A stretch of 63,320 nt of DNA, filler included, from Bipalium vagum (GCA_037834085.1; 3 parts of 3 records of this genome joined end to end with filler, not necessarily neighbours in it); one strand, 5' to 3'. Positions 8,431 through 63,214 are shown, counted from the first letter of the whole stretch. Notes: a model not told the origin generated them from the sequence alone. Numbers and translations: made by a program.

Positions 8431-8439
8431 TTCGTGCAT

Positions 8440-32745: not shown

Positions 32746-33099
32746 TATATAATACTTTAGAATTACAAGATATAAATTTAAGGAATTGTAAAGAAAACAA
32801 AGTAAAATATATAGCTGAATCAGGACACCGCACTCTAAACATTATCTAACTCGTTTATGTTTTTTGTATATCTTGGAAGGATGAGCCAAAAATGATATCT
32901 CGTGGTTTTCACAGCTACACCAGATAGTATCTGGATTTTTAGAGTATTAAGATTTATTGCTCTATCCATTTACTTGACATATTCAAATTATTATTTATGC
33001 AAACATTTTTAGCTGTTCACTTAATTTTAGTTTTTTCTCTATGAAGTTTCCAGTAAATGAGGCGTACAAATACTTTTCTTCAATAGGAAAAGTTCTATG

Positions 33100-33570: not shown

Positions 33571-36500
33571 TACCAAATTTTTATTTTTTAAAAATTTATT
33601 AAGTTTACAGTGTGACCAAGAAGAAACCATGTCCTATAAACTGCTGAAACAATGAGAACCAAATCCAAGATAACAATATATTTGTAGTTATTATTTTCCT
33701 TTTTATTGTTACCTAATAAAATTATTTTTCTTACAATCTCTGTTATACGTCGATAAGCTATAACAGGATTTGTTTCTATCAATTTTGTACTTTCATACAA
33801 TAGTTTTCTCTATTACTTATCTCAATAAATTGAAACAAATGAGCATTTATTATTTTATCATTTAATAATACAAAGAGTTTTTTCTTTTTATCAGATCAAT
33901 GTAAATTAAGCAGATTAAAAAATCTCATTGAAAAATATAAACTTCATTTACTTTAAGTATTTAACTGTTTGTATAAACCATATATCATAAATTGGAAAAT
34001 TCTAACTTAAGGGATTATATTATCAGTACAGATATTTTCTGAGGTTTTAAATTTATTAAATTTCTGCATTATAAAAATTTTATTCAAAAATACTTAAGAA
34101 TTTTTTCAAAAAAAATTAACTTGGGTATTTTGAACCGTTAGTTGTTTATAGGAAAAATGTCTTCAATCAATATTTTTGAAATGGGAATGTATTTACTTTG
34201 TTTTATTAAATTACTTTAATCCATATATAAATCTGTATAATTAATAGCCATAACAGGTAGATTTTAGTTTATTAGTTATAAATCTTTATAACTAATAGTT
34301 ATATTTTAGTTTATTTTCTAAGTTAATCTTTAAACTTAATAGTTACCAAAGTATCCACTGGTAAAAAGTCCATTATATTATTAATAAAAGGTTGCTGAAG
34401 GAAATTTCAACCGAAAATATCTATCAGCCACTAACTTTTGTATTAATTTGACACCAAATAAAAAATAAAATGTTTAAACCATGTTATGATGGGGAAGTTA
34501 TTGATATGCAAACTAAGAAATGGTTACGAAAAATCAAAACTATGTACAGAAGGTTAAAAAATCATCTAAAGAGGAACTGTATATCAATTGCAAATAATGG
34601 CGTGTTTGAGAAATTTTCAACTCATAAGAAATCAGATCTTTCACGTGCGCATGAACTGCTCTGACTCCTGGGCTACATCCCCAAACTAATTTTCAATTAA
34701 TCTCAAAATCTTCATCATGGTAATTTTACATGGCTCATGCTTTTAGAAACTTATTAGAAAATTATTACAGTAAAAAACGAAGGCGATGCAAAATTGATTA
34801 TTTAAAAAATGTTAAATACAAGAGATCTAAAATACACTTTCTCAAAAATTCAATATACCAAGCATCCGAAGAGTTTCATTCAGTTTTATATAATATGAAA
34901 GTATAAATTATAATTTTCTGTGAACCAACGCTGTTAAGTATGGTCGGCAACTAGACGAACTGAATAATGAAGTACCTCAAACTCCGGAAATATATAATAT
35001 GCAATAAGAGACATCAGACAAAATTTGTCAGTCTTTGAGTAAAATATTTTCTCACCTTGCTCATTCTCATTATTACCCTATCGTTTCAGTTCCTTGGGGA
35101 ATTATTTATATGAATTTTAGTTTTTAGAAAGTGTCACGAACCACCTAGGATATGTTTCAGTTAACATTACATTCTTTACATGTGGTAATTATGATATAAA
35201 ATTGCAACTCGGTAGAAACAGGTGATTGAACAAAATGATCAATATAAACTTCTGTTATTTAAAAGATTTTTAATTTTTTTCATATGAAGTAACCTTTGTC
35301 CAACCTATTATAATGAAAATCTATATATTATAATTTTTTGTATTAATTGTTTTAAAAATCATTTTCTATAATATACATATACATCGAAACAAAGAATATT
35401 TTTAAAAAAAAATAGTTTTGGTATATATATTAGTATTTCTTGAAAAAAAATCTTACCATTTGTCAGCATTGTAGAATCCAATAATAATATATTTTGTTTT
35501 ATAATTTGTTATTAAATATATAAAACTATTGTCTAATTTTGTATAGCCAATCATTTTCATTCTTTATTAAAAATGTAAAATTCCTTTCATAAAACTACAA
35601 TTCATTGTAAATAATAATTCTTTTGTGAAATATTAAATAATAATTTATTTTCTAAAGATACAAAAATAAATAAAAGTAATAATATGTGGAGATTTGATAG
35701 AAAATTCTTGAACGATACTGTTAATTAATAGATGCATTTTAATTATGTACAATGAATAAAAAGTATAAAACTAAAAATATAAAACTAAACTATATATACT
35801 GTTAAAACATTTCTTAAACTCACTTAGATTATATTTCAACCATTTTTACTAGATAGTGTAAAAATTAAGTAAACAAATTATTTTAATACTACTTTAATAT
35901 TATAACGTGTTTTGGTTTTATTCTTTCAGGTGATCTCAATTTTTGTAAATATTAAAACTCATGATTGTTTATTAATTTCTTCATTATTGTTGGCTCAAAC
36001 TAATTTTTAGACTAAAAATTTTATTAAATCATCGAAAAATGAATATCGATTTTATTTTAAATAAAAATTTTCAAAATTATTTTTAAAATAATTTTCCATT
36101 TAGTTTTTCAACTTCCTAAACTCAAAGATAAATTTTTTTAATTTATGCTTATTCAATTATATTTTTCATTTTTATCAATCATTTCCTGCCATTTTCTCGT
36201 TAAATTATAAAACTTTTTAACTCATGATGTAGACAAAATGTCTGATGTGAGTTTAAATAGGCATTAAATGACCATTAACCAAAATTGAAGAATGTTTTAA
36301 AAATTTTATATTTTATTAAGAAGATTAATAACATATTTTTACGTCTAATGAACTCTGTGTTGAATCGATTTAACTAAGTATCACATGAACTTCTCATCGG
36401 TTTATCTGAAATTAAAAAAATAGAATCTTTAAATATTGTATAATTTTCAGGTTTTTAAGTTGTATTATTTTTAAAAGATAAATTATTCCTATCAATGTCT

Positions 36501-36779
36501 GGTGTAAACTAATTTAATATTAGAAATAAAAAATGTAAATATTTTAATAACAAAAGCCTAAAAGAACTCTGGTTTTGAGGCGAACTAGTTAGAGACTTAC
36601 TTTAAAGGTCTCCATACGTTTAGAGGTCCTATTCAAGAAATTCATGTACCATTGACCAGAACACATGAAAATCTAAAAAAGCAAAATTTTGTAAATGTGG
36701 CCAATTGGTTAGTGCTTCCTAAGTATCTTTTAATATGCTTTTTGCTACTTTAGAAGAGTGTAACAGTACGTTGTAATAG

Positions 36780-36990
36780 AGCAAAACTACTTTACCATGT
36801 CTATTTGACTATTCTGAAGGTTAGCAATTAAACATTTATTCAGCTGGACTAATTGATTTTAATAGTGCTCAGATTTACCAATTTCACCTGACTTGAGAAG
36901 CAAATGATACACCACACTTTTTTAATCCCACCAGAGGTATTGCATTTTTTCCTTTCCAAAGAGGCTTGGTTTTGCAGTCTGTGTTGACGT
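36780..36990 (-). mobile_element. Mariner internal fragment
   Basis: TAKPSLFGKEKMQYLWWD-KSVVYHLLLKSGE. Confidence 0.7.
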
Positions 36991-37019
36991 TTGATCAAAA
37001 GTATGCTCAAGTAATGAAA

Positions 37020-37510
37020 ATCGTAAAAGTGTTAGCTGCAGATTATATTGTTAGCGATGGAATTGTTCTGATCTTTGTGATTTTTTAACAATAATAGATG
37101 AAAAACACCAACGAACCTGCAATAATCAGTACATAGATTCTGCTAAGCACTTGAATGCTAAACAATTTCAATGTGAGAAAAATGTGAAGAGACAAATTTT
37201 TATCGGTGATGCACTCACTTCTTCAAATGAAAAAGTTAGAAATGAATTTTTATGGAAATAGCATGAACATTTTTTGCTTGTGGAATTCTTCTTGCTGACA
37301 GATAATCCAAAAATGATTTCATACCTGCAGAAATACACTGGAAAGTCAATTCCAGATGAAAGTAAATTAAGGAAATCGTACATAAAATCCCTCCATGAAG
37401 AAATATTGACACTAATCAAAGAGGTAGTTGTTGATAATCCAGTATATTTTATAATAGACGAATCCATTGGTAGAGTGATCTTTCTCAACATACAATTATG
37501 TATCGCATGA
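37020..37510 (+). mobile_element. hAT-like/CGGBP1-related transposase N-terminal fragment
   Basis: IVSDG..., YIDSAKHL (zinc-finger-like), YLQKYTGKSIPDESKLRKSYI...VYFIIDES (first catalytic D). Confidence 0.7.
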
Positions 37511-37899
37511 CTGGAGATGTAGTCTGATCCAATAAATATCAAACGCTTGAATCTTATTTATTTTAATAGTTTTATGTATCATTTGTTCACTAACTAGTGT
37601 ATCAAACGTTAAACCTGACTCAAACTCTTAGGTGGTGCAAAAATAATAACAATCAGTAAAGCAAAACTTTTATTTATAACACAAAATCACAATGATAACA
37701 TTTACACAAAAATCTTCAAACTCAAGGATCACAATAAGATCTGAAATGTCTGCATTTGTCTTTATCAATCAAGCACAAAAGGTTTAATAAAGAAAACAAA
37801 ATAAACACTTAAATGACTTAATAGCCAAATTATAATAATAATTAATTAAAAATTATATTAATAATAAAGTTAACTGTTAAGCAAGAAGAAAATAAAAGT

Positions 37900-39000
37900 T
37901 AAATAAACGAGCTTACAGGCTAGCTTCGCTTAAACTTCCCGGTTTTAGCTGAACCTTTACAGTTGCTCAGAAATACCCCTCTGTTGGGGTACTCAAACAC
38001 AATGCCAGGGTTGGGTACATTAAAAATATACTTGGAATTCTCTGATAATCTCCTCCAAATAGGGATTGTCTTCTCCAAATAGCGATTGCCTTCTCCAAAT
38101 AGCGATTGGAGACAGAAACACTGACTGGATATGAGCTGTTCATCTTTTGGTGGTGGAAATCCTTTGCACTTGTTATACAGACATCTAGCAATGTGTTTCA
38201 TTGAACAAGATGGCATTTATTTCTGACCTGGGTAAATTTTTCGAAATTCAACATCTTATCGCTCATGAAACCATCTAAACCTGTCTTCCCGGTAGTACTA
38301 AACATACGATTCCATCACAATGATTCGTCCATACCTATGAATATTCATTTGTTGTCAATCATGTTTTCCACTAGAGAAGTCTTTCTGGACAAAATTTGCG
38401 TAGCTTCTTCTTTGTACAGTATTTACTGGTGATTCCTTCATTAGTTATTTCTGTTCCATCGTTTTGTATAATTTAGCCCAATTTCTAATATTGTACTATT
38501 GGATGAAGCTATTAGGGGTTCTCTGAATCCTGCATTTTATCCAGCTTTGATAACAAATCTTTCACTATTTCTTCTCTGGTCATACCTTTCGCAGAGCAGA
38601 ATCCAATAAATTCAGAACTCAAATTTCCAAATTTCCAAAGCGTTCATCTCCATTTTGCTTCATTTGTGCCAATTCCACAAATAGATCGGTAAAAGATTTT
38701 TTACTGTGAATGTAACAGTTAACCTCTTTAATTGTGGTATCTGACTTAGAATTTCACCCCAGAAATGCTGCTTCTTTGAACAATAAAAGGTCAGAAGCAC
38801 TACTGAGGTAAAACTTTCTAATATCTTCGATATCCTTTAACCACCGCTCAGCTTCTGTCGTGCTTCTTCAAATCTGGAAGTTTAAAAGTTCTTCAGCCTT
38901 CTTCATTAAAGCTTCCATAATAATTTTCTTCTGTTGTTTTGTAACATTCACGTTTCCAGTGTGGTTTCCAGTAAAATTTTGTTTAATACTTATTTAAAAA
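37900..39000 (-). mobile_element. Degraded LTR-retrotransposon gag with zinc-knuckle remnants
   Basis: Cys/His-rich HIARCLYNKCKGF...QCFC in ORF 37920-38216; LTR-like sequence at ~37598-37900 next to it. Confidence 0.45.
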
Positions 39001-39229
39001 AAACAGCAGTGTAATCAAAAAGTATTTATTAATTAAACTAAATTGCAAATTTTATAACTTTTATGTAAACTGTTTGGTCTGGAAAATAATTTCCAGTGTC
39101 TTTTGAAGAACTAAGAATAAATAAAAAAACTAAAATATATAAGCTTTATTCGAAAATATATACAGTCTGATACATTAAATTGTCCAGTAAATGAAATTAC
39201 ATTTATATTATATTTATATCATATTTATA

Positions 39230-39530
39230 TACAGAAAACAATATATATTGTTAATATTTGGTATATCCTCCAGCTGTATCGATTATTGCGGAAAGCCTTC
39301 GCTCCATAGAATCTACAAGGCTGTACCGATAATTCTCTTCTCCCATGATAGTGGTCCACAAATCCTGACACTTGCTGAACAGTCAGATGTAATTGGCTTT
39401 ATGATCACATGATTAAGCTGGTGTTTCATGCGCCCCCACACATTTTCGATGGGGTTAGCATCAAGACTGATTGTTAGCCACGGCAGAAGAGGTATATTTA
39501 CTGTTGGAGGTATCTACTTTCTTTTATCTT
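39230..39530 (-). mobile_element. Tc1 (DD34E) C-terminal fragment
   Basis: WLTISLDANPIENVWGRMKH matches the Tc1 WPxxSPDLNPIENxW motif. Confidence 0.8.
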
Positions 39531-40829
39531 TCAGGCTAATAATTAAGAAAATTATTTAAGAAACTGGGATATTTAATTTAATAAAAATTATTTTAATTAA
39601 AAATTATTAAATTAGAATTATTAGTTTAATCCATTTAGAAATCAAAGACTGGAAAAATGTAAATTAATGAGGTAAATAATATAGAAAATAAGAATTAAAA
39701 CTCAGGATTTTTAAAAAAAGTTTTAAAGTTTTAAAAAATTATTAGAAAATCTGTTTCAATAAAGTTCAAATGAAATTGTTTAATTTCATTGATTTTTTTA
39801 ATACATCGATTTTTTATGAACAGTCTGGCTTTAGAAAACCGACATTTTTTGAAAATTATTTTTTAACTGAAAATTTTTTTTTGAAAAAGATATCTGTTCT
39901 AGTAACTAACAAATAACTCCAGATCAAAATAAACTGTAAGAGAAGGACTTCATACATAATAAACCGACGCAAGCAAGACCATTACGAAGACCAACAGTAA
40001 ACTGGAACGCGTCTAAGGATCCAATTCAATAAAGAAATCATATTTTGATCTGCAGCTGGAGAATATATTTTAACCAATATTATAGAAGACAAATATCATA
40101 GACATAATTAGACAAAAATTCAGAAGCCATCCCTGGAGAGAAATCACAACCCAGACCTGTTCTTGTGGGTGAGTGGGTAAATAATTATGTTTTATAATTA
40201 TTTTATTACTATTATTATAATAAATGAAACTTACTGTTTTGGTATTTGTGGTCCTTTATTAAAAAATAAAACTGTCCTAAGTGTTGATCTTTATTCATAT
40301 TATTAAAAATGAAGGAAAAGAGCAACCTGAGAGTAATAAATTTTTTCGTAGACAATTATAGAACTGTTTAGTAGATAAATATATTCTCATAGAGGGATGA
40401 AGAGCTATAAATTTTGGAGCAGGCAGTCTAGCAGAAAAAAAATAAATTATCATCACTTAAAAATTTTTATACTATCCTTAAATCTAGCGGTATTTTTCTT
40501 ATGGTATTAACTCGCGTAAAAATGCACCATTGTTTAACATTTCATGTTATTGCTAATATTGCAGTTTTGGTAAAGGGATTATGATTTCCGTATTACGAAG
40601 TTCATTTGTGCTTGTACAAATAATGAAAAAAATAAAAACAATTTGTTTTATAAAAATTTTTATATTTCTTGAAAAATAATCTTAATTACCATTTTTCAAC
40701 ATTATAAAATCCAGTGACAATGTTTTTGTAAATTTTTATTATTTTCAAAATATTTATAATACAGTTATAAATAAAAATAATAATATTTTTAATATTTTAT
40801 CTTTAATGCTAACTTATTTATATCATTTC

Positions 40830-41376
40830 CATATATATTCAAGATGGTTTCATTAGCACGGAATGTTATGACATCTGTATTTTGGAATACAAAAGAAATT
40901 TTTATTAAATTATGCTGAGAAATGAATGACAATCAAGGCCCAGTATTGTATTAACCTGTTGGGCCAATTTTATGTCGAAATTCGTGAAAACAACTAGGTT
41001 GGTATAAGAACAAAAATCATTTTTCTACAAGACAATGCACTCACTTACAAATGCTTTTAACCATTACAAAATTAAATGAATTGAAGTACGACTTGCTTTA
41101 CCATCCATCCTATTCACTCAATTTGGCTCAATCTGATTTCTTTCTTTTTCCAAACCTGAAAAAATTCCTTTTCGTGGCAATCAAGAAGTAAGTGGCGCTG
41201 AAGATAACTATTTTGCAGGCCGTGGTGAAATCTATTACAATTATAGTTTCCAATTTCTAGAAAAAGGTTGGACCAAGAATGTTTACCTAAACGTAAAGTT
41301 TACCTAATATAATGTGATTTTTGGAAAATAAATGTTTGTTCTTTTCATTTTCAAAACTTGTCAAACCATCCTTCGT
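40830..41376 (+). mobile_element. Mariner 3' half with right TIR
   Basis: NVMTSVFWNTK, FLQDNA, HPSYSLNLAQSDFFLFPNLKK; ends aacttgtcaaaccatccttcg-TA. Confidence 0.85.
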
Positions 41377-44176
41377 AAAATTGTCAAATTCTGTATGACC
41401 AATTATTTTCAGTCTTTAATTAAAAAGCTCTAATTCCTTTGAAATTCGTTCACTTATAAAATATTAAACTAGAATTATATTCTAAAGGTAGAGAAATTAA
41501 AGACCACCAAATATACTTTTTCAGATAGAACTGAAATTCATTTTAAAAACTATTGCAAAAAAGAATTTTAGAAGTGGTAATTAATTAATTAATTTAATTA
41601 GCAATGTATTGTTAGTATTCCAATTACATTGTGAACTCTTAAAATAATACCATTATATTCAGAGTTTTTTTAATTGAAAATGTGAAACCTGTTGAAAAGA
41701 TTATATTATATATTAATATGATTTCTTCAAAACAGCATATTTCTTTAAGATTAAAATAAAATAATAACGTAGAATAAAAATATATTTTGACTAAATCCTC
41801 TAATTATATTTTGTATTCATGGCTATTCAGTAACTGAATTTCGGTGACATCCTTCAATTTCATATGTGATTCGAAGATTTTTAGAAGTCAAAGTTATACA
41901 GTTATCGCTGTTTACGTAACCAAAAACTTGAAAGCCTGCTTCATCGTAATTAAAAACCTTTCCAATTATCAATATTCAGATGGATCTATCCTTAATGGAG
42001 AACCGGGAGATCTACGGGAACCTCAGCTCGACCACATTCGACTGAGCTAGATAATATTTCTTTATTTAATATATTAATTTTTTTTGAAACTTATACAGTC
42101 TTAATAGGTCCTATTATACACTAAGTAAATCAAATTTCTTTGCCCTCTTGAATTCTGGAATGATATGGATTAATGTGAAAAAAAGAATTTTGTACATATG
42201 GTTGAATAAACAACGCTCAGGACACTTATTTATTTCCTGGAGGTGAAACCATTACCGATGATGTTTATTTCAATCAATTATCCCGTCCAATTTTAAAAAT
42301 CAAAGGCCCATGTCTAGTATTAATGACTAAAAAGGTGTTATCATATAACACAACAACCTTAGATCTCATATCTAAAAGAGAAAAATTGGTAAAACTTGAT
42401 TGTAAGTTTAGGAATCAATTCTTGCATTTATAAATATAAATTTCTATATATTTTTTTAATAATTTTAAAACTATTATATCTGGTTTATTATTTGTAAAGT
42501 AATATAATCATTTAGAATGAATGCCAAATCTATTTTATTTTGTATGATACTTTATATTTGTCCTTGACTTTACAATTACTTTAAATATTTTTGGAAATTT
42601 AAAGAGCTCTGTAGGAAATTGTCCTTATAAATATTTTTGCGTTTATTTCCAACCACCTTTAGATTGATATGACATCACCATTACTCCGTCAAATAATAAT
42701 TATTATTTTAAAATTTAACAAAAAAACTTTCATTTAAAAATTTTTAAATATTAAAATATACTGATTATAAAAAGCATAATTTAATTAAATAATATTAATT
42801 AATTAATTAATTAGATTATCAAATAAGTATATTATAAATAAAATAAATAAATAAATAATATATCTAATCAATTAAAGTGATCTTAATATATGTTCTGTGA
42901 TATTTGTTTGAAATCTTGTAAATATAAATAAATATATTTCAATTACTTTTTTGTTTTAATTAATACCTCGTGAAAATTAGCATTTCTTGTTTTACGGCTA
43001 TTTCTACATGAGAGAAATTATTGAATTTTTCCAATGTGTATTTTTTCAGTACATGATCTGCTTTTTCATGCTACATTAATGTAGCTAAAATTTTAGCTAA
43101 TTCGTTGATCATTAAATTTACACATTAGTTATAGATATAAAAAGTCGAATAATTTCACCTGAAAGATAAATACAAAAGCGAAGTTAAACGTTACATTACA
43201 TGTGTTATTACAATAAAAACGTTACAAAAAATGGAAAAAATCAATATTTATACTTAATAATATGAAATAATGATTATTAGAATGCCCGGCAACATAATTG
43301 TAAAATATCAATTATCCAAATGGAATATCAAATCAGATAACAGGTTCAATGGCTTTGGTGTATAATAAACTATGAGAATATGTTAATCTTATATCAAATT
43401 ATATAATAAATTTAATGTATATTATTATTGATCTGAAATGTTTGCTTAGAATAATATGTATAGTGACAAAGAAATTGGTCTATTGTTCCTAATACTAATG
43501 TTTATTAATATTAACAAGTCAATTAGAAGACAATTAATATGATTAATAATAAATAAGAAAAGAAAGATGAAAAGAAAATTAGATTCTGATTTTAACGATT
43601 TTATCTATGTAAAATTTTTATTGGTAACCGGAAAATTTTGATCTATTCCAAATCATTTGGGTGAAATTTTTTTCTCGGAAGATTTCTTAGTATAAATTTA
43701 TTATAATAATTTATTATTTTCCATGCACACAAACCGTCAATAATGTGTAATCTATTATTTCATTGTAAATTCCAATTATGTTCACTATCATACTTATCGA
43801 TTGTTTTACTTTACAAGTTTTATAATAATATTAATATTAATATATATATATTAATAATATTATTAATACAATAAATGCTTCTTTGAAGATCTCATCACTT
43901 ATAACGTTCATTCTTCTAACTCTGTTTAAATATTATTCACTAATGAAATAAATGAAACAATTGTTAAGTTTCAACTAAAAAGATAATATAATATGAAAAT
44001 GAAAATGATTATTAATATTTATTCTGGTTAAGAATATCGAAATTGGACTTTTTAGGAACTTAACATAAACTTTATGTAAATTCAGAAGGATTTAGTGCGC
44101 GTACGTTCGAAGTTAAAGTTTGAGTGACAATAAAAATGTTGATTACTAAACTTGAACCTTTTAAACTTTTAAACAA

Positions 44177-44276
44177 NNNNNNNNNNNNNNNNNNNNNNNN
44201 NNNNNNNNNNNNNNNNNNNNTTAATTAATTAANNNNNNNNNNNNNNNNNNNNNNNNNNNNNNNNNNNNNNNNNNNN
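44177..44276. other. Artificial contig linker (44 N + TTAATTAATTAA + 44 N)
   Basis: Same structure as 17853-17952. Confidence 0.95.
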
Positions 44277-44419
44277 TTCATACATTGCGGTAGAACAAAT
44301 TAGTGGCTGTCGATTAATTTAAAAAATTAAAACAAAAAAATTTAATTAGATGCTAAATACTACAATTTATAAAAACGGCGGGAACTTAGTTGCCAACCTA
44401 ATATATTTGAAATATATTC

Positions 44420-44471
<52 letters not shown>

Positions 44472-44472
44472 T
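44420..44472. repeat. (TAT)n microsatellite, ~17 units
   Basis: Directly visible. Confidence 0.95.
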
Positions 44473-44516
44473 TACCTTTAATTATCTCTAAAATTTTCTG
44501 TTTTTTGATTTTAGAC

Positions 44517-47075
44517 CAGTTAGATTGTCCCCTTGAGCTCGGTGAAGCAATTCAGGAGAACGGTAGATGGGAAAAGTTTAAAAGAGAGCGGTGAAAATCT
44601 TTTTAAAATGATACGTTAATTTATTTATTTAATTTTTAAAACAGCAAATAAATTTTCAAATGAGTTCTGAATTTAATTATGCACAATTTAAAATTAAAAA
44701 CTCAAATCAAAATTAAAAAATTAATGAAAATTAAGGAAACATACAGTCTTGTTTAAATAATAATTAGTTTTCATTTAAATTTCAAATTTTAAGAAACTTA
44801 AATCAGTATTAAAAGTATCAATATATTAAACTTAAGTCTTAATAATTAAGTAATTTTTTAATAGATTTTATTAAGTTATTATGGCTGAATATAAGAAGAA
44901 ATGTCGCTATTATAATATCCAATATTTAAAATTAGGATTTATGGAATGTCCAACAAATAAAACAATATCGCAGTGTTTCATATGCCACAAAACCTTATCA
45001 AATGAAGCAATAAAGCCGTAAGACTACAAGAGAATTTAATCAAATTACATCCCGATGAGAAAGATGAAGATGTGCGCTTTAGTTTATGGTACAATTTAAA
45101 AAACCATTGTGTAATCATCATGTAATTTAATTTTTGTACCACATAAATTTTGATGACATAATAATTTTTAAATTTTAAAAATTATAAGATGAAAGAAGAG
45201 CAAGAGGAAATATCCACTAAAACAATTTGCAATTGGTAAATTATTTTTATTATTATTATGTATTATTATAATCAATCATAGTGATTATAATCATAATTCA
45301 ATCATAGTGATAAGAAGCACCCTTTTAAAAGTATTTTATTTTTTTATTTTCTACACTCATTTTCATAATTTATTTCTTATACGCTGAAGGGGTTCACACA
45401 AACAGGATCGAGTCAATGTGGCGGCCGATGAAGAGTTGGTTTCGGAAACGACAGTCGAATGAAGAGGCATTTGAGGCAACTTTATGCGAATATCTCGCCA
45501 GACGGGAATGGCGCTTAAATGTTGTCGATGGCTTTGAAGAGTTTCTGCTATATATACGGGAATGTTATTCATTTCATAAAATAATTTTGGTAGATTAAAT
45601 ATTCGTTGTTTTTAATTTATTAATTTTTATTATTGTGTTTAATTATATTTTGTACCACATATTTTAATGTGACCATATTTTAAATTTTATGATTATGTAA
45701 TGATTACATAAAAACATAATTTTTTGAATTGTACCACAAAGTAAAGCGCAACCAAAAAAAATTCCTTTAAGCAACAGTTCAATTAAAAGAAGAATAGATG
45801 AAATGGTTCAAGATTTAGAAATCATTTTGTGTAAGTATTTGAAAACATCGATTTTTTATCCAGCTTGATAAATTGACTTTACCAGACAATGAATATGTTT
45901 TATGTATATGTACGATTCATAAGAAAAGAAAAAATTGATCAGAAAATATTATTTGTAAAGAGTTCGGTTTCTAATACTAAAAGTGAATCAATATTTCAGG
46001 AATTACAAAAATATTTCATAGAAAATGATAATCCTCTTAGCAATATTCTGTCATTTGCGACTGACGGTGCTCCAGCAATGTTAGGACGTTATCTAGGGTT
46101 TGTGGTACATATAAAAGAGCATTTACCCAATTTATATGTTATTCATTGCGTTTTACACCGTCAACATTTATTGGCTAAAAATCTCAGTGAATGACTGAAT
46201 AAATCATTGCAGTATGTCATTAAAGAATTCAATAAAATAAAAGGAAATACGTTAAATAGCAGATTATTTAAAGACCTTTGCGAGGAAAATGACGAGAAAT
46301 TTAATCATTTATTACTTCACACTGAAATTCGTTGTTTGTCACGAAGTAACTGTTTGCCACGATTTTATATTCTGTTTAACTGTGCTCGAGTTTTTAGAAC
46401 ACATGGATAGTGTCTTAGGGCTTAATTTGATATAGCTTATTTAACAGATATTTATGACAAATTTAATAAAATGAATTTGCAAATTCAAAGTAATAATCTA
46501 AATTTAATTCAAACGAAATGCGTTATTTCTGCTTTCGTGCAAAAATTCAGATTTAAAAACAAAAGTTGGGTCGAAGAGAATTTAAGCACTTTCCACATTT
46601 ATAAGAGGTTGAAACAACTGATCATGATATTATCAATTATTGTGATCATTTGGATTCCATTTACTTTATTTCAATGACAGATACCAAGATATTTGAAAAA
46701 TTGACATTCGAATTGGCTTTTAAATCCTTTTTATAGATACAGGCAAAGATAAATCTTTAATATCGCAAGAGGAGTTGAAAGAAATTAAAACAAATGAAGA
46801 ATTTAAATTTACGTGTGACTACCAAAACTTACTAGTAGTTTCAATTTTTATGTATAATAAAAATTATTTTATATTTTTATCTCCTTATTTTCATGTTAAG
46901 ATATGACATTCAATTAAATTCGACGTTAAAGGTGGCAGATTTTTAAGTTTCAATGTTTCTACTATGTTTATAGTATATTATAGTACATTTGTTTATTGAT
47001 AAAAAAGAATTTAAGTGGGCGATGAGAAATTTCTTTTTCAAAAAGGGGAAAGCAGATAAAAAAAGTTTGAGACAA
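44517..47075 (+). mobile_element. Decayed hAT transposon of the Buster/SCAND3/FAM200-like group, interrupted by a Merlin element
   Basis: MAEYKKKCRYYNIQYLKLGF...QCFICHKTLSNEAIKP (BED-like, 44881), IPLSN..IKRRIDEM, ATDGAPAMLG, IHCVLHRQHL, LLLHTEIRCLS; terminus-like aaaaagtttgaga near 47070. Confidence 0.88.
45071..45753 (+). mobile_element. Non-autonomous Merlin (IS1016/IS1595-like) element
   Basis: ~30-bp TIRs tgcgcttta(g/c)ttt(a/g)tggtacaatt(t/c)aaaaaa. Internal INHS and GVHTNRIESMWRPMK...LCEYLARR, matching the Merlin HTxxIExxW...ExxxR C-terminus. Confidence 0.8.
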
Positions 47076-49941: not shown

Positions 49942-51060
49942 TACGATGTTAGACTAAAAACTACTTAGACTCTTCCAGAAATAATGAAGATAACTGAACA
50001 AAATTGTTATTAACAATACATATACATGTATAGGTATCATTTCTCGACATAAACGCCGTTTATATCGACGAACTTATTCCACCGGTCAACCATTCCATTG
50101 AAGCCCATTTCAAAGAGATTTTTATTCTTCTCCATAAAGAATTTCGCCACATTATCCTTCATATCATCATTTGAAATAAATTTTTGTCCTCGCATGTATT
50201 TCTTCAGATGGTTGAACAACCAGAAATCTGGACTGTAAGTGGGATGTTCAAGCTGTACAAATCCAGCATTTGCTAATATTACTTGAGATTTCTTTGATTT
50301 GTGAATATGAGCATTACCATGGAGCAAAAATATCCTGTTTCGGAGGCTTGCGTAAGAGATTACTGTAGTAATCGGAATTTATGATTTCTTCAGTAAAATA
50401 TAGCTTCAAGATGCCTTTTCTATCCCGAAAGATAGTCAACATGGCACATTTACGATGCAAAATTTCCAAACGCGAGACTTTAGATGGCTTCTCACTTTGA
50501 AAAACCCATTCCTTTGACTTTCTTTTAGAGTAAGAAATGCAGAGACTCAATAACGTCTCGTCTGTAGTAATGATATTCCATTAAAATAATAGCCAAACAT
50601 CATCCAGAAGACAAAGATTCCTTTCACAGGCCATTTGTCGTCAAGTCATTATATTGGCTGTTAGAAATCTCGGAACAAACCTGCTACATAGTTGTCAATT
50701 CCAATTTGGTCTAGAAGCAACTGAGTGGTTTGTTTGCATACATTTCGCTTCTCAGAAAGCTGAGATTGAGTAATTTTTCGTTCTTTTTTTACAATTTCTT
50801 TCAATTTTTAAATAATTTCTTCATTAATTTCGGCAGTTCTTCCGCGCTTAGATGCTTCATAAACACTTGTACGGCCAGATGAAAAATCGCGGATCGTTAT
50901 AGATGGTCGCCTCACATACATGGGGGTTTTCACTGTATACCCCTTTTAGTTCATTAATAACTTCCTGCTTGTTAGATCTCTTCAGTAGTAAAAACCGGAT
51001 TACACTTTGAAATTCTACATTTTCAAACATTTTTTTGAATTTATCATATCTAGTGCAAAC
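49942..51060 (-). mobile_element. Near full-length decayed mariner
   Basis: VEFQSVIRFLLLK, FVPRFLT, IITTDET, LHGNAHIH, HPTYSPDF, RWNKFVDINGVYVEK; TIR-like cgatgttagactaaaaactacttagact. Confidence 0.9.
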
Positions 51061-51520: not shown

Positions 51521-52189
51521 ATAGTGTGACGTTTACATCAACAGATACTGATGAAGAAGGTTTAGATATATCATTCTAAGAAAAACATCGTCGTACTTGC
51601 CAATCCGACAAATGTAAGAACAGAACAACTGAGCTTTTAATGCTTGTCAAAAGCCCTTAAGTGATACATAAGAACAAGAATTTCAAATTCGAAAAGGACT
51701 ACGATTTCAAATTCCAATTCAAATTTACAAAGCGTTTCAGTTTATTTGCAAAAGACGACAATCATTCGAAGTCTCACCTCATTTCCATAGTATATGATAT
51801 ATTTTGATTACAGTAAATTTTGTTCATTTTATAATAATTTATTATAGTTTTTATTATTTATTATTATTAAACTTATTTCATTATCTCTGGTAAACTCATT
51901 TAGTTTACACAGATAAAATTAAATTGACTCTAAAATCTAAAACTTTCCCTGGTAATCACTAGTAATAGGGTTGCCTTCACTTTTGTTTTTGCATCCTCTA
52001 ATTTTTCTCTTTTGTAACCTAAGACCCCATATTGAGTATTTGTAACTTGAATTCAGTCACTTTTAGGGAAACTTAACATATTCACCATTTGTCTGGTGGT
52101 CTTTCAAGAGCGTAGTGTATCTTCAATTGATTAGTCAATGTTCAAAAATTTTGCAAATCATTTTTGAGAGGTTTTCTCTTTTAACCGAA

Positions 52190-52968
52190 CGGATGAATTT
52201 TATTTCGCATAATGAATTAGACATGAAAAAATTAACGGCAAGATTGGTGCCGCCTTTGCTTACAGTTGAACAAAAACAAATAAGAATGAATCTTTCTCAA
52301 GAGTGTTTGGCAAAGTTTCAGAAGAATAAAAGTGATTTTTGGCAAAAACTGTCAACACTGATGAAACATTGGTTCATTACTACACCCAGAAAGCAAAATC
52401 CAATCAAAGCAGTGGAAACATTTGAACTCTCCACCTACAAAGAAAGTGATGGCCGCTAAATTTGCTGGTAAGGTTATGGCATCAATATTATGGGATCCCA
52501 AAGGAATTCTTATCATCGATTATCTCCAAAAAGGTGAAACAATCAATGGAAAATATTAAGTAAAGCTGTTGGATAAAGTGAATACCATTATTAATGAAAA
52601 AGACCCAGTTTGCAAAAAAAAATTTCATCAAGATAATGCTTGTCCACATACGGCACTGATTACAATGGTAAAAATCAATCAAGTAAAGTACGAATTTCTT
52701 CGACATCCCCCATATTCACAAGATTTGACTCCCTCTGATTTTTACTTGTTCCCAAAGTTGAAAATTTTTCGTGGTTTTTTTTCCACAATTTCTTTCAACA
52801 ACAGAAGAGATTCATGAATCCGTAAATCATTATTTTGGAAGCCTTGAAGAAAATCACTTTCGAATTGTATTAATTTTGAGGAAGATTATGTTGAAAAATA
52901 ATGTAATTTTTGTTAAAATAAAATTGGTTTTTCTTTTTCATTTCGTGAACTTTTCAAACCAAACTCGT
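52190..52968 (+). mobile_element. Mariner 3' two-thirds with right TIR
   Basis: LDMKKLTARLVPPLL, TDETLVHYY, HQDNACPH, HPPYSQDLTPSDFYLFPKLK; ends aacttttcaaaccaaactcg-TA. Confidence 0.9.
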
Positions 52969-54557
52969 ACAATAAAGTTGGTTTGATAAATGTAACAAAA
53001 ATAAAATAATTAAAAGAAAATTTTAAATTAATAAATTTAAATTCTGTTAGATGTTCCATAAAGATTTTAAATATACTTACTTTTCAGATCAGATAAGAAA
53101 TTTAGTAATGTAAAAATTAAAAATTAAAATTAATTTTTCACTAACAATAAAAAACATTGTTTAATATAATTAATAGTTATTTTTTAATGAGTTCATTATG
53201 ATAAAAAAAAGATACTTTATTCCTTTATGAAGAAGATCAATTATATCACATTACGTAAATAATTTCAGATTAATATTGGTTTGGTACTTTCATTAAATTT
53301 CTCTAATTAATTTCAATAAATAAATATTTGCAATTTTTATGTAATATGATAACCGAAAAAAATTATTGAACAAATTTAAGATTGCTGGATAAAATAGGTA
53401 ACTTTTACATTGTTTTTGACGGCGACTATCTATGATTATGATTGATTAATCAATGAATAAAGTTTAAATGATTAAGAGTGTGGCGCCATTTTCGTACGAG
53501 CAACATAATCAAGAGTATTATTAATACTGCCATATGAATTTACTTGTGGCGTCATTACTTTCAATATGTATCTTTAGACTTTAGGAGAGTTCATTTGTAG
53601 TTGAGCAATCCTATTTATGAACAAAGCTCATTTCGTCTTGCCTCTAAAGGTCTGAAAATTCAGGAATTTATTTTTTCTCTTTTTTCGAAATAATTTGTTT
53701 GAATGAAAAGAAAAATATATTTTAAAAATGTTACATTTTTATCGAAAAAAATTTTAATTATTCAAAATCTATTATTAGATATTGATAATCAAAGAATTTT
53801 AACGTGGTTCAGAAAAAAGATTCTTAATGTTTTTTGTAAAAAGATTTACAAAAATATGAACTTAATTAATATTTTAAAAAGTTCGTTATTTTCGTTTATT
53901 ATCCAGAATGCCATCCCATTTCATTAATATTCATAAAAACAGTTTGTTTAGCTGAATTTCTAAAATCAATTCGGATCTTCAAGCTCATGCTGCAAATACA
54001 TTTATCAAATAATGACATTTCCTTCAATGTTATCATTAATTTTAATGATTTCAGAAGAGATTAATTTTGGGTAAACTCGGAGAGATTTTTCTCAAATTGT
54101 TGAAATTATTAACTAACAAGAACAATGATTAATAATTATTGCAAAATTCAATAATAAATTAACAACTTTAACTTCACACCTTCAGATGCTTTTTAATAAA
54201 TATATGTTATATGCTGAACAATTAATGTTATGTTAAAGCCTGTGAATGACTTCAAATTATAATTTAATAATGGGAACGAAAATTTTTTAAATTACTATTT
54301 TTACTTAGAAATAAAATGATTTGTGATTTGTAAATGTCCGTAGTAAATTATTTAATCAAAAATATTAATAGATAAATTTAATTGAAATAAATATTAGACT
54401 TATTAAAATGATATTTTTGCACTTTAAAATCTAGCACGATGAAAACAGAGATCAGTGGATAATATTCAAAGGATAGACTGTAAATTCAAGACTTGAAATA
54501 TTGAACACTCGAAAAAATTCAAACATGGTATTTGTGAGATAAATTGAAAATTAGTCA

Positions 54558-54605
54558 GGGGATGTAGCTCAGCGGTCAGAGCAGTTCATGCGCATGTGAA
54601 GGTCC
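54558..54605 (+). tRNA. 5' part of an interrupted tRNA-Ala gene (anticodon probably CGC; anticodon arm slightly degenerate)
   Basis: GGGGATG-TA-GCTC-AGCGGTCA-GAGC...TTCAT-GCGCAT-GTGAA-GGTCC: acceptor 5' strand, A-box, D-arm, anticodon arm and variable loop. Confidence 0.85.
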
Positions 54606-55920
54606 ATAAAATATATCTATACGCCAAAATCCTTTGCAGGAGCTGGTGTTACTTCTGTTGTTGACGAATATTTGGTTCAGTCGATCACAAATGTGTTCCA
54701 GCTGTTTAACTCTGCAGATCAAAATATCCGACACAAATGCTATCAAAATTGTTGGTGGAGAAAAACCAGTTCCGCAAATAATCAATTGCAAATGAGACAC
54801 AAGATATCGGTCAAATTCCAGATCAACTAAAATGGAATTTGCCTCAATGTTTTCCAACAACTTAATCCAGGCTACAAAAATGAGGCACTTGTCAAACCAA
54901 AGAATGCCAAGTTGATTTCCAAAATACTTCATAATCTTATCGATAATTCATGGAATTTCAACTGGAATAATCAATCAAGTGCTGTTCGCTTCGCGTCTTC
55001 AATTGGCCAATCATCAATCTCCACAAGACTTATATTCAATGGCGAAATTTCCATCTCTGCATGTTATTCCATACATAGATCCAGATCATACTCTAACCAA
55101 ATCAATGCTCGACACGAATCACCATTCAGAGGATACTGAAGATGTGATGAACCAGAGGAAACTCTATCCCATGTTCTAGTCGGCTGTGATCAGTCGAAAA
55201 TATTTCAGATCTGTCGTCACAATACCATCCAAGACTATCTCGCTGAACAGATCAAATCAAACACAACGGCTAAAGTGTTTGTCAACGCAGAGAACTAATA
55301 TATCAACTCTACGCAACGAGTGGATCTTCAAATTGAATTCACCAATCAAAAACGTCTTCTCATAGACGTCAAATACCCTTATGACACCGAAAACAACATG
55401 TTTTGGAATCATGAGAAAAATCTCAGGCATTGTGAAGATCTGCTCAACAAAACTAAAGAAGCATTGCCGCAATGGAAAATAATTTTGGATATATTTGCCG
55501 TTTGATGCCTGGAATCATGGCAAATGCGGAATGACGATAATCTCAAAAAGCTGCAGTTCTCAAAACGCAAATCAACCGAAATCGGAAAATTCTGCGTATC
55601 TTCGAATATCAAATGGAGTACACCTCAGTGGAACTTTCATCGGAATGTCGGAAAGCTGAAGATGAATCAATCTGAATTGGACGATAATGCCAATGATGAA
55701 CCACAAAGCCAGACAGACGACAATGATGACAGACAAAATCTGACTGATTGTGAAGGCGAACTAATATAAAACTGTGACTGATTTAACAATCCTGAATTAT
55801 GTGATAATTTTTTTTCTTTTCTTTTATTTTGTAAAAATCTTATGCTAGGCTCACAGAAATGTGTAATTGATTTATGTTAAACTATATGTAAAAACTTGTT
55901 GTGAAAATACAATTTTGTTC
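54606..55920 (+). mobile_element. 5'-truncated non-LTR retrotransposon with restriction-like endonuclease (R5/NeSL/R2-group), inserted in tRNA-Ala
   Basis: RT thumb YIYTPKSFAGAG; IHRSR; degenerate CCHC knuckle RCDEPEETLSHVLVGC; RHNTI; RVDL...LIDVKYPYD (PD-(D/E)xK type); FAV-CLESW..N..L; ORF ends 55769, then ~150-bp 3' UTR; stops and frameshifts present. Confidence 0.88.
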
Positions 55921-55941
55921 GTTCGAATCCCGGTATCTCCG
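55921..55941 (+). tRNA. 3' part of the interrupted tRNA-Ala gene
   Basis: G-TTCGAAT-CCCGG-TATCTCC-G: B-box/T-loop plus acceptor 3' strand pairing with GGGGATG (includes G3:U70); TTTT at 55947-55950 may be the Pol III terminator. Confidence 0.85.
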
Positions 55942-56223
55942 ATTAATTTTCAGATAACAGTATTGTTTCGCATCAAAATTCTACAGAAAAATAAATTATA
56001 CGACTGAAAAAGAATTTTTTGTGGTAATTAATAATTTCGGGGAAAATTATTTTAAAAATTATTGATAAGTTAAAGAAAAAAACAGAGATTACCTCATATA
56101 ATGGAGAAATCAGAATTAATGATATACAAATATTGAATGCATAGTTGACTCAGTAGTTGTCAGGATTTTAATATAGTTCTAAAGAATTGTCCTTGAATGA
56201 TTCAGATTTTTTTTAATTATAAC

Positions 56224-56592
56224 TGTTATATTATTTTTCTCATACTGAGTATCAATTGATAGAAAAAGTTAAATTATAATTCCTATAACCAATTTGCTAC
56301 ATTTTATATCTAACCTTAGGCTCAAACTTTACTGACCCTTCACTTATTGTTATTAACGTCTTGTTATGCGAATAAATCAAAATAATCACAGTAAACTTTC
56401 TCTGTTTACTCCAAAACTGTATCAACACTTTCAATTTCACAAAATAATGAATGTTTACAATTTATCACCACAAACGAACCAGAATTTTCAATATTAGGAA
56501 TGATCACCAAATGTAAAACAATTAAATCAATAACACTCAAATAAAATGGTCAAATGGTAATAAAAATAACCTAACCAATAGTTATGATAACA
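56224..56592. mobile_element. Probable solo LTR
   Basis: Bounded by tgttat...ataaca inverted termini; internal similarity to 17572-17852; no clear TSD. Confidence 0.4.
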
Positions 56593-57604: not shown

Positions 57605-57840
57605 TATGAGGTGAGATTATTAATTTTTTTGTATTTGAGGAGAATAGAATTAAACTTCGTCATCGGAGTAATTAATCCCTTTATCTAACTTTTTCTTGGA
57701 GTATACACCCATTGAACTATAATATGAGGTGAGATTATTAATTTTTTTGTATTTGAGGAGAATAGAATTAAACTTCGTCATCGGAGTAATTAATCCCTTT
57801 ATCTAACTTTTTCTTGGAGTATACACCCATTGAACTATAA
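57605..57840. repeat. Perfect 118-bp tandem duplication (2 copies)
   Basis: 57605-57722 is identical to 57723-57840. Confidence 0.93.
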
Positions 57841-58306: not shown

Positions 58307-59611
58307 TTATTTTATAGAATCAATGAAATGTGAACTTTCAAAAATGAATTTCAATAATTCATCGGAAATCAATTGCAACTTTTGACATCGAGAATCACTG
58401 GATATCATTTTCAGCACACTGAGTGCTGATTGGACGTCATTCATATCCAATTGAATGTTTTGTCTATCCCAGTTTATTTTAGTAGGCCAATTGCTTGATA
58501 ATCGAAAGAAAACGTGATTGAAAAAAATTCGCATCGTTGAGATTTTAGCAGAATCCGAATCAGAAATTTCTTCGATTGCTATATCGCTGATCTTAAGTAT
58601 TTCTTTTAATCGCTTATAAATGATGAATTCGGCCATGGCAATAAATTCTTCAAAATTCATGCCACTATAAGCTTTTAAGCATTCCTAAAACTGTTTTAGA
58701 TTTAAATAACTTTTAATGAAATAGACTTGGCACTGTTCGATATATCCTGGTGTATTTTTGACGTCTTCTGTCTCTCTTTCTATGTCATCTAGCTGCTTAC
58801 TCAGGTGGTGCCACGACATGCTGACATTGAATCCATTGAGCCAATTGTGATTTATTGATATGCAATCAGTGATGTTCTCGACCTGGTGATACCATCCACT
58901 GGGAACAAACATTATTTCACCTTCTTCTTGAATAACTTCGATATAAGGCACATCTTTCAAATCAGAAACCGAAATAATATTGTTTACGACTCCAGAACTG
59001 TTAGGATCAAATCCTGGAGGAATCATTATCCATCTTTTTTTCCCGGATATATTTGCAGACCAACTATACGATTTAAAAACATCAAAATGCATCCCTGTCC
59101 ATGTACCCTTTACACCAATATATACAAATCGATAATCATCAATGACATCCTTTCTGATATCAAAAAATTCATTTAACCAATCTCTTGTAAAATGAGGAAG
59201 TAACATAAACATCCTTGAAGTATTTGGCTTACTTAGAAAAAAATGCCAATCCTTTAGATACAATATTCTTTCATCTAATCCATTGTGAAAATTTTCCCAG
59301 TATGATATAAAATCTCTGATGCAAATTTCATATTTCAAATGTGAATCAAAATAAAAAGCTTTACAATCAGAAACATTTACCATATCACATAAATCATTGA
59401 ATTGAAAAATTTCTTCAAAACTAATATTTTCGTTCGTTTTCCAGGACTTAATACATTCCCAATTTTCAGTAAATATGTTTTTAAAAATACACGGTTTATT
59501 CTTTTTTAAATAGCTGTAAAAAGTATTATACATTTTTATTATATTTAACAAAACTAACTTTAGATAAAAATCTTCCACGGATATGCTTGAAATTCTTTTA
59601 ATAGAAATCAT
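58307..59611 (-). CDS. JMJD4: JmjC-domain 2OG/Fe(II) oxygenase JMJD4, ~405 aa; exons 59611-59559, 59513-58727, 58684-58307
   Basis: NKPCIF, LYLKDWHF, DWLNEF, DDYRFVYIG..GTWTGMHFDVFKSYSWSANISGKKRW, FVPSGWYHQVEN..DCISINHNWLN. GT-AG introns of 45 and 42 bp restore EQCQECLKAYSGMNFEEF. Confidence 0.93.
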
Positions 59612-60249: not shown

Positions 60250-63214
60250 TTAGAAAAACCATACTGAACCAACACAAACCTCAAAGAAAAGCTTCCAGGC
60301 TTCAAAGAACCTCAGGAGCTAATGGAGAAAAATAGTACCTCTCCAAAAAATAATTAATGAAATTTAGGAACAAGTTGATAATCACAGCGCAGCTGTAAAC
60401 ACCGAAGCTGTACAAACTGATGAACAAAAATCAGGAGGAGTACGCGAAGCTCACACCGCTAAAGGTGGAGTTTTACCACTTATGCCAATTCTTGGTGCTA
60501 TCTTTGCAGGTTTAGGAGCAGCTAGTGGGGTTGCAGATGGTGTTGCAACAACTGATCAAAAAGTAAAAGAAAGTCAGAAAACTAATTTGGAAAAAAATTA
60601 CTAATGGAAATAGAAAAGTTGAAGCCAAAAACAAAGTTCTAGGAAACAAAGCTTCCACATCTGAAACAACTTAAGCAGGACTTTTTATGATCCTTATTTT
60701 GGCAAAGGATTAAAGGATACAATTTTAAATAGTTCAGAATATAACAGAAAACAGAAAGAAAAGAATTAAAGGAATTATTAAGGAAAATGTGTAAAAATAA
60801 AATCAAAATTATCAAACAGGGAAATGGTTTATATTTTGATCTCTATGAGAAAAATAATTAGAATTTTCCCAACTCAAAATCTTTTCTCAAATTTTTTTAT
60901 AAAAATGCAAGACTCGATTCGATTTTCAAAAATTAACTCTTTTACGAAGCAAAGCTTCAAGACCATTCTGGTCGCTTTTAGAGTTTTTATATAAATATGG
61001 AATTAACTTAACAACAAATTTTGATTTAATTGATATTGCTGAAGATTTAGAAATCCCTCTAAAAGTTTTAATGCGAGATAAAGTCACAGAAAAAATTCCA
61101 TCCAAAGGATTAAACAGCATAGATGTGCCTTTAATTATTAATTATCAAAATACAAATCAAAAAGGAATTCATTGGTTTGGTTATTACGCACCAAAGGTGC
61201 GTGAGACGAAGCTGTATAAAAATTTTTACTTTCATTCTTATGGTTTACCACCACTTAAAGATTTAGAAAAATATGTTAAAGAATATATTGAACTTGATTT
61301 TCAATCTGAAGCAGATTTAGAATATTGTGGACAATTAACTTTATATGTTTTATATCAATTACTTAAGGGAAAAAAATTTGATGAAATTTTAGAAGAGTTG
61401 AAATATGTTATTTTTGATAAGTTAAAATTAAAAAATTAAAATTAAATAAAAATTGAAAATTTTAATCAAAGACTCGCTTTTGAAACCAGGTTTCAGATGA
61501 TCAAGTATTTGTTAATATCGCTAAAAATGGAGAATATATTTATTCAAAATCACCTTATCAATTTAATATGAATAATAAAAATGAGGTTAAAGAATAAATT
61601 GACTTTATTAGAGATGAAAAAGAAAATAAATTTTTAAATGTTATAGGATATTCTATGAAAGGAATTTTAAATGTGAATAATAATAAAATAATAAATGTTC
61701 CTGAACCAATAAATGAAAATGATGTTGTAAATTCAAAATACGTGAAGGAACACTTCACAAAGATTTCAGCTGATTTAAAATAGTTTTCAAAATCTATTCT
61801 ATGTCAAATTCATATAAATAAAAATTTTGCTAAAATAAATATAATTCCCTTTTCTTTACTATTCAAAATCAATAAAATATTTGAAGAAGAAAAAATTAAG
61901 ACATTAATAAGAATTGAGGAAATCGAAAAAGAAATATCACAAAGATCTAGAAATGAAACTTGATAAAAAATATGGAAAATTTAAAACAAAAGTTTTATCA
62001 TTTATTGAAACATTTTAAAAATGACATTAAAAGATTCTAATGCAAAAGATTTGAAGACCATAGAAAATAATAATAAATATGTAAATGATGCAATCATAAA
62101 AATAACAAAAGAATCTGAAGGTTCAGAAATTAATAAATAATATTAAAATAAAATTAAAATCATTTCTTGCAATTGATGATCATAAGAAAATATATGAAAA
62201 ATTAAATCCTTTTTCTTGGAGATCATATTGGAAATCTTTTACATCTGGAATTAATACTGAAAAGACAACCTCTGGTCTGTTAAAAATTTATAAAACTAAT
62301 ATTGGACATTTTCAAGGAGAGTTAAGAACAGAAATAAAAGATGCAAGCTCTGCTCTTGAAACCAAAGGTTTCGAATTTACATTTTTTTTATTTGCAGAAA
62401 AAATCAATTATGAAATTGATAATATTTTTAATTTTGGAACAACAAATAATTATCATGTTTTTGGTTGGTATAATACTTATATGAATTATTTTATGGTTAA
62501 TGGAAGACCTCTTGGAAAAACTTTTGTTCAAGAAAAAAAATATACAGGATTTGATTTAATATTTTTAGATTGTAATAATTCATTCAAATTTAAATTACAT
62601 TCAAATTTTTTTTATAATTCAGTAGAAAAATATTCAACAATTTTTCCATCAAGTGGTAATTATAAATTTAGATTTAATTCAGCAAATATTAAAATTTATG
62701 AGATTATAGTTTTTCATAAAGTTTAATTAAACAATCAACTGAAAGAAATTGAAGTTTTTATGAAAAGGTTTTATCCGAATATAAAATATGATGTAAAATT
62801 TTAAAATTTGTTTTTAAAAATGGAAATTGAAAAAATTGAAAAACCAACTGCTCCTATTTTTCATGTTTTACAAAACAATTTCGCCTGTGAAGATGATGAA
62901 GGAATCTCTAATAAATTAATTAATCCAGCGAAGATTTTTGATAATCCTATTATCACGTAATTGGAAAAAAAATAGAAAATTTTATGAATGAGAAAAAAGT
63001 ATTAGGAGATTTACTAACTCATTATAAAAAGTTAAAATTTAAATATACTAATATACTAAATATACTAAAATAGATTCAAAATTAAAAATTGGAAGTAATG
63101 TAATAGCAGAAATTTTAGGAGCTAGAACAGCAATTATGACTGGTGTTTCAACTTTAGGTATTGAATTATTAATTTATATTTCTGTTACAACTGGTATTTT
63201 AGGAGCTGTAAATG
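60250..63214 (+). mobile_element. Degraded Polinton/Maverick (adintovirus-like) segment
   Basis: Co-oriented, densely packed remnants: pX-like GG-VLP hydrophobic peptide, GxGLY repeats, adenain-like protease, fibre-like motif, hydrophobic ORF remnant. Confidence 0.75.
60903..61439 (+). pseudogene. Adenain-family (Polinton PRO) cysteine protease
   Basis: LTTNFDLIDIAEDLEIP..VLMRD, IINY....GIHW, YFHSYGLPP, Q....YCGQL. Frame is open upstream of the annotated ATG; the likely start (60905) is out of frame; catalytic Asp of YFDSFG appears as His. Confidence 0.8.

Follow-up and report, generated by a model that had tools for sequence, protein, structure and literature searches.

A tRNA-Ala-derived mobile repeat of Bipalium vagum interrupted in its T arm by a decayed copy of a predicted R2/NeSL-group retrotransposon

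In a stretch of 63,320 nucleotides from Bipalium vagum (GCA_037834085.1; three parts joined end to end with filler, hereafter the window), we found a tRNA-Ala-like sequence whose two halves are separated by a retrotransposon remnant. What is interrupted is a copy of a tRNA-Ala-derived mobile repeat and no working gene, and the DNA between its halves reads as the 3' end of an R2/NeSL-group non-LTR retrotransposon with a restriction-like endonuclease (RLE), truncated in the RT thumb region. The reading that we favour, with some confidence, is a nested insertion, a mobile element inside a mobile element, by an RLE family that probably prefers this T-stem/B-box site. The features of the locus are collected in Table 1.

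Table 1. Features of the interrupted repeat and of its insert, in window coordinates
Feature	Position	Strand	Content or basis
Left GTATT, direct-repeat copy (target-site duplication)	54528..54532	+	Abuts the unit boundary 54532/54533
Repeat-unit leader, 25 nt, starts TGT	54533..54557	+	54545-54556 pair with the trailer
tRNA-Ala-like 5' half	54558..54605	+	Acceptor strand GGGGATG, A box/D arm, anticodon arm, variable region, first T-stem base
5'-truncated, decayed copy of a predicted RLE-type non-LTR retrotransposon, 1315 bp	54606..55920	+	Frame, protein alignment, depth
ORF remnant, 388 codons in one frame: RT C-terminal part (thumb), linker, CCHC, RLE	54606..55769	+	
CCHC zinc-knuckle remnant	55134..55187	+	Alignment with P0002, P0007, P0001 and P0006
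RLE core	55215..55373	+	RHN 55215-55223; RVDLQIE 55317-55337; LIDVK 55359-55373
3' UTR, 151 nt, no poly(A)	55770..55920	+	T-rich tract about 55809-55836
tRNA-like 3' half	55921..55940	+	Last T-stem base, T loop, T-stem strand, acceptor strand
Repeat-unit trailer, 19 nt, ends ACA	55941..55959	+	Pairs with the leader; contigs diverge after 55959
Right GTATT, direct-repeat copy	55960..55964	+	Read directly

The split tRNA-like sequence and the repeat that carries it

The two halves (54558-54605 and 55921-55940) lie 1315 bp apart, in agreement with the original prediction of one tRNA in two halves, except that the cloverleaf ends at 55940 and not at 55941. In the 5' half, TA stands between the acceptor strand GGGGATG and the D arm, and the 3' half reads T loop GTTCGAAT, T-stem strand CCCGG and acceptor strand TATCTCC, with GTTCGAATCC as its B box. 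Each half occurs once in the piece, with 0 of 100 shuffles giving a match. In the split state, neither ARAGORN nor Rfam, the latter at its gathering score, called a tRNA. We then rejoined the halves at all nearby junction combinations and submitted the products to ARAGORN, which drew a cloverleaf only when CGG was placed between them. In this cloverleaf, the acceptor stem spans 7 bp and the D and T arms are normal, and the claimed pairing of the acceptor strands is borne out, with a G3:U70 pair. The proposed rejoining with CGG thus yielded a cloverleaf, but one with an anticodon loop of 6 nt instead of 7, which ARAGORN reported as tRNA-?(Ala|Cys)(gc) with no codon assigned. The first 18 nt are identical to common eukaryotic tRNA-Ala 5' ends, and the base 3' of the acceptor stem, at the discriminator place and outside the cloverleaf (55941), is G. 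Of the features examined for a functional tRNA-Ala gene, the G3:U70 pair was present and the 7-nt loop with an Ala anticodon was absent.

To place the sequence in its genomic context, contigs of one public sequencing run were mapped to 54000-56500 at a likeness of at least 80%; their summed depth is not a copy number, and we took only orders of magnitude from it. Summed depth was about 30-100 in the unique flank bins (23 and 26 for the contigs flanking the locus itself), ~175,000 in the bin with the tRNA-like 5' half, and 31,000-46,000 in the 3'-half bins, where just 11-28 of the 84 positions belong to the unit. Immediately 5' of 54533, 368 contigs turn into mutually unrelated sequence, and 115 diverge immediately 3' of 55959 with no consensus among their flanks, which shows that the unit 54533-54605 plus 55921-55959 stands in at least several hundred places. 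From summed depth, the tRNA-like repeat is roughly estimated at about 10^3-10^4 copies; the flank count is the more robust evidence of dispersal. The uninterrupted unit is abundant in the contigs of this run, where exactly CGG joins 54605 to 55921, so that the bases held to be missing from the window copy were found in place. No indels were reported in the anticodon-loop region among thousands of placed contigs, which suggests that the 6-nt loop belongs to the repeat family and is not private decay.

The complete unit (54533-54605, CGG and 55921-55959; ~116 bp) lies between 5-bp GTATT direct repeats, for which the chance probability at the unit boundaries is ~2% with a slack of ±1 base. Its leader and trailer were folded by RNAfold into a stem of 12-13 bp that stacks on the acceptor stem and extends it. 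The original prediction had named a tRNA-derived SINE as the case that would speak against it, and this is essentially what was found as far as a tRNA-derived repeat is concerned, but not as far as a SINE is. The unit has the tRNA-related head, with its A and B boxes, and the high copy number and target-site duplication of a SINE; a body and an A-rich or LINE-derived tail are absent, and the 5' end lies 25 nt before the cloverleaf, which is not a pol III start. Like the tRNA-Gln-derived Sm-alpha of Schistosoma (PMC2770079), the repeat is tRNA-derived, exists in thousands of dispersed copies, and has A and B boxes and a target-site duplication. Unlike tRNA-derived SINEs, it is a unit of ~116 bp with a 25-nt leader, lacks both body and tail downstream of the tRNA-like part, and has a trailer that extends beyond the T run. 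Its TGT..ACA ends and complementary subterminal sequences are closer to a cut-and-paste or integrase-type element than to a pol III retrocopy, and a tRNA-like MITE and an integrase-type element are both candidates for its identity. With its 5-bp duplication and paired leader and trailer, this repeat is an odd element that is worth attention by itself.

The retrotransposon insert and its protein relatives

The insert lies in the same orientation as the tRNA-like sequence, and its single frame aligns with RT- and RLE-bearing proteins, as had been predicted for a non-LTR 3' end between the halves. The frame is broken by four in-frame stops (54828, 55137, 55296 and 55503) before the terminal stop at 55767-55769. 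Its X-joined translation matched P0002 at 39% identity over 380 aa (E = 4e-85) and P0007, a protein of 1103 aa, at 33% (E = 1e-68). Both relatives carry Pfam RVT_1 (E = 1e-13 and 2e-27, respectively) and zf-RVT, the latter falling at the CCHC block, which in the aligned relatives reads CxxC...H....C. In the window copy, this motif has lost its first Cys to a substitution, with a stop in the codon that follows, which leaves the knuckle recognisable and dead. Of the PD-(D/E)XK motifs of a restriction-like endonuclease, the window copy shows RHN, RVDLQ, IDVK and ESW, with a change at the KY position; these columns are invariant in the alignment behind A2, a C-terminal-domain profile that we made from six relatives. 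When compared with the RLE domain of solved R2 proteins (PDB), A2 gave E = 6e-14 and lined up RH, D, D-x-K, K..KY and G.W, the endonuclease motifs defined for R2Bm (PMC4838377). This profile match and the alignment of the relatives uphold the earlier reading of CCHC, RHN and RVD..IDVK. Downstream of the frame, the 3' UTR terminates in TTTTGTTC, its last 4 nt being the first 4 nt of the downstream target.

The copy lacks the N-terminus and the RT core. Of the RT, it keeps the post-palm (thumb) part only, collinear with the RVT_1-bearing P0002 and P0007. In structure and function, the element belongs to the R2/NeSL group of RLE retrotransposons, within which a place in the NeSL/LIN lineage is putative. 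The closest solved proteins to the relatives are, for the RT as well as for the RLE domain, those of R2, the 28S rDNA-specific element (9nl2, 9nl3, 9dou and 8gh6), and P0007 had its best solved matches among R2 retrotransposon proteins (E = 6e-52). Residues 1-260 of P0007 matched Peptidase_C48 at E = 1e-3 and 19.4 bits, under the cut-off of 20.7. Ulp1-like protease domains have been reported in nematode NeSL families and in Utopia-1_TSP (PMC4640811), and this weak Ulp1-like signal may be taken as a hint of NeSL affinity.

We also searched for closer relatives of the insert. An exhaustive search of representatives with the 68-aa nuclease piece returned eight protein clusters at 36-46% identity; none of the eight was a same-family protein, the best standing at 46%. 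In word-index searches of protein collections, from which six ORFs of the window looked up exactly were absent, hits besides the query numbered none for the C-terminal piece, two for P0002 and one for the ORF of L003 (see below). Pfam found nothing significant on five stop-free pieces of the insert, and a PDB search with the 68-aa RLE piece gave no match. An exact search with the last 21 nt of the element returned nothing in viral contigs; the sole match in bacterial genomes, to a Bacteroidales MAG, was taken for chance. A metagenome scan with A2 yielded one locus, L003 (1424-5643 of JGI metagenome contig Ga0209893_1000189), which contains a 1044-aa RT+RLE ORF with a long ORF upstream; an identical protein is encoded on L008. 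L003, 32% identical to the query over the RLE region, is a distant full-length relative. Downstream of its ORF, ~1 kb that contains tandem repeats leads straight into a 5'-truncated tRNA-Phe-GAA (L003:5590-5643; Rfam tRNA E = 6e-4), which lies in the same orientation and runs from the D loop onward. It is possible that L003 belongs to a tRNA-Phe-targeting family, its 5' junction lying beyond the L003 DNA read. The contigs of the other relatives examined contained no tRNA-like sequence, and their 3' flanks were short or uninformative.

Within the window copy, summed contig depth was 3,000-10,000, which indicates that the element belongs to a multi-copy family; a rough estimate from the same depth is about 10^2 copies. 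At many sites, three of the four in-frame stops among them, nearly all other family copies in the contigs of this run carry another letter, so that the window copy is old and privately decayed and the family as a whole looks better preserved. The earlier judgement that the copy is dead agrees with its four in-frame stops and its substituted CCHC cysteine, and from these sequence features we regard the element at 54606-55920 as dead.

The junctions and the question of target preference

Protein homology begins at 54609, three bases past the end of the tRNA-like 5' half, which implies that there is no filler DNA at the 5' junction. The 3' end of the element, which is in sense orientation relative to the tRNA-like sequence, directly adjoins cloverleaf base G53, which borders the B box, and the flank that follows is GTTCGAATCCCGG. 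The target has lost 3 bp, the CGG of cloverleaf positions 50-52, and shows no target-site duplication. Seen as an insertion into a multicopy target, this one copy combines sense orientation, a 3-bp (CGG) deletion and a target that exists in thousands of copies. The element ends in GTTC, the same four bases with which the downstream target begins, a match whose chance is about 1 in 256; this microhomology could reflect pairing of the RNA 3' end with the target, or coincidence.

A sequence of events can be read from these junctions. The ~116-bp tRNA-Ala-derived repeat landed first and made its 5-bp GTATT duplication, and the R2/NeSL-group RLE retrotransposon later entered the T arm of the repeat in the same orientation. 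The arrangement is consistent with target-primed reverse transcription, in which a bottom-strand nick beside the G before TTCGAAT would leave the element's 3' end adjoining GTTCGAATCC. Reverse transcription would have stopped early, so that the last 1315 bp alone remain, and a second-strand cut ~3 bp upstream would have removed CGG without producing a target-site duplication; a stagger of about 3 bp between the two cuts would account for this loss. The copy decayed afterwards, gaining four stops and losing a CCHC cysteine.

Several of these features have counterparts in known systems. Like the NeSL-related tRNA-specific families (PMC4640811), the insert is related to elements with a single ORF that holds RT, a C-terminal zinc knuckle and RLE, it is inserted in sense inside a tRNA sequence and has no poly(A), and it is a 5'-truncated copy that keeps its 3' junction. 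In contrast to NeSL-1_TV, LIN15_SM and LIN25_SM, its target is a tRNA-Ala-like, high-copy mobile repeat and not a gene. It resembles R2 in the motifs RH, D, D-x-K, K..KY and G.W (PMC4838377) and in the small target deletion with no duplication; it differs from R2 in its target, and its relative P0007 shows the weak protease signal at the N-terminus. A tRNA-Ala-like target is not among the tRNA targets listed in PMC4640811, and a full-text literature search found no report of one. The novelty that had been suggested for the target is weakened, since NeSL-related families specific for tRNA-Pro, tRNA-Arg and tRNA-Glu are already published.

We next considered whether the family prefers this site. 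RLE elements are mostly target-specific, the NeSL-related families specific for tRNAs include NeSL-1_TV (tRNA-Pro) and the planarian LIN15_SM (tRNA-Arg) and LIN25_SM (tRNA-Glu), and targets have diversified within the planarian LIN/R5 lineage (PMC4640811). Also counted in favour of a preference were the relative L003, followed by tRNA-Phe ~1 kb after its ORF, and the GTTC microhomology. In addition, the repeat makes up no more than a few tenths of a percent of the genome, a rough estimate that assumes ~10^4 copies of 116 bp against at least 376 Mb of contigs; with ~10^2 family copies, chance hits in the same orientation would number less than about one per genome. Taken together, the analogy with related RLE families and this rough probability argument, applied to one 3' junction, suggest that the family probably prefers the tRNA-like repeat at its T-stem/B-box edge, and perhaps true tRNA-Ala genes at the same place. 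The stronger claim, that the family is strictly specific for the T-stem position just 5' of the B box in a repeat of thousands of copies, is one that we put forward tentatively, as somewhat less probable than its negation. Contigs bearing the 3' end of the family seem to end by about 55914-55917, which suggests that copies differ past the element end, through ragged junctions or different flanks.

The main alternative to a preferred site is a chance nested insertion, in which an RLE family with no target preference, or a very loose one, happened to land in one repeat unit. Hundreds of different flanks surround the unit, whose copies number roughly 10^3-10^4, and among thousands of targets in a genome some chance nested insertions are bound to occur, cases that a scan such as ours picks. 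Loose specificity also has precedents, as LIN25_SM is weakly specific, with a tRNA-Glu flank in one of the four copies of S6 Fig, and U2 genes flank few reptile Utopia copies (PMC4640811). Moreover, the family's 3'-end contigs seem to break just short of the junction, and among the best-supported joints and loose ends of the contigs, most of which stem from the tRNA-like repeat, no second junction between element and repeat was seen. Set against this are the expectation of below about one same-orientation hit per genome, rough as it is, the 4-nt microhomology between element end and target, the tRNA targets of relatives, and the combination of sense orientation, a clean 3' junction and a 3-bp deletion that is typical of RLE elements at a defined site. 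We regard a chance insertion as rather unlikely, though it deserves serious consideration beside a preferred site.

The original prediction had taken the target for a tRNA-Ala gene, bona fide and formerly functional, and the family for one specific to such genes. The G3:U70 pair in the acceptor stem, the A and B boxes, and the first 18 nt shared with common eukaryotic tRNA-Ala 5' ends all fit this reading. It is opposed by the 6-nt anticodon loop with no ARAGORN codon, by the thousands of placed contigs without a reported indel in that loop, and by the G at the would-be discriminator position. The 25-nt leader and 19-nt trailer are, in addition, conserved with the unit, mutually paired and bounded by a 5-bp duplication, and the copy number is far above that of a normal tRNA-Ala gene family. 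A gene as target is thus improbable, and the claim gave way to that of a high-copy ~116-bp repeat with its own 5-bp duplication and a 6-nt loop. Even less credence is due to a chimera, either a SINE with a tRNA head and a LINE tail or the product of a template switch from LINE RNA to a tRNA-like RNA. The order of a 5' tRNA-like part followed by a LINE 3' part does resemble a SINE or chimeric retrocopy, but the LINE end is immediately followed by the missing 3' part of the cloverleaf, the trailer and the second GTATT. CGG is the sole difference in the empty form, and a chimera would not restore the downstream half. With all three of these downstream parts present, the chimera and template-switch models were rejected.

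If the nested insertion reflects a site-specific family, an Ala-like T-arm target would join the published tRNA targets of RLE retrotransposons, and the RLE element would be one that lives within another mobile repeat and not in genes, which bears on the diversification of target specificity and on the search for programmable TPRT enzymes. Strict specificity, if true, would make the tRNA-like core of another mobile element a safe haven and would add a new endonuclease/target pair to the NeSL/LIN-like group. If the family is not site-specific, the locus is an ordinary nested transposon insertion.

Neighbouring features of the window

Other features were noted around the locus. At 61071-61439 (+), a 122-aa ORF has the pattern HW...Q...CG by eye and recalls Ulp1/adenain-type proteases of Maverick/Ginger-type transposons; it had no Pfam match at E ≤ 0.1. 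Decayed remnants of mariner/Tc1-type transposases lie at 52115-52817 (+) and 50037-50327 (-), with a Pfam Transposase_1 match at 52422-52556 (E = 4e-11) and a weak DDE_3 match at 50040-50327. The sole host-like gene seen in the piece is a JmjC/Cupin_8 hydroxylase-like gene at 58307-59611 (-), which comprises a 308-aa ORF (Pfam JmjC, E = 8e-18) and, after a short gap on the same strand, an ORF of 117 aa. At 57605-57840, a 118-bp unit stands in exact tandem, its two copies being 100% identical.
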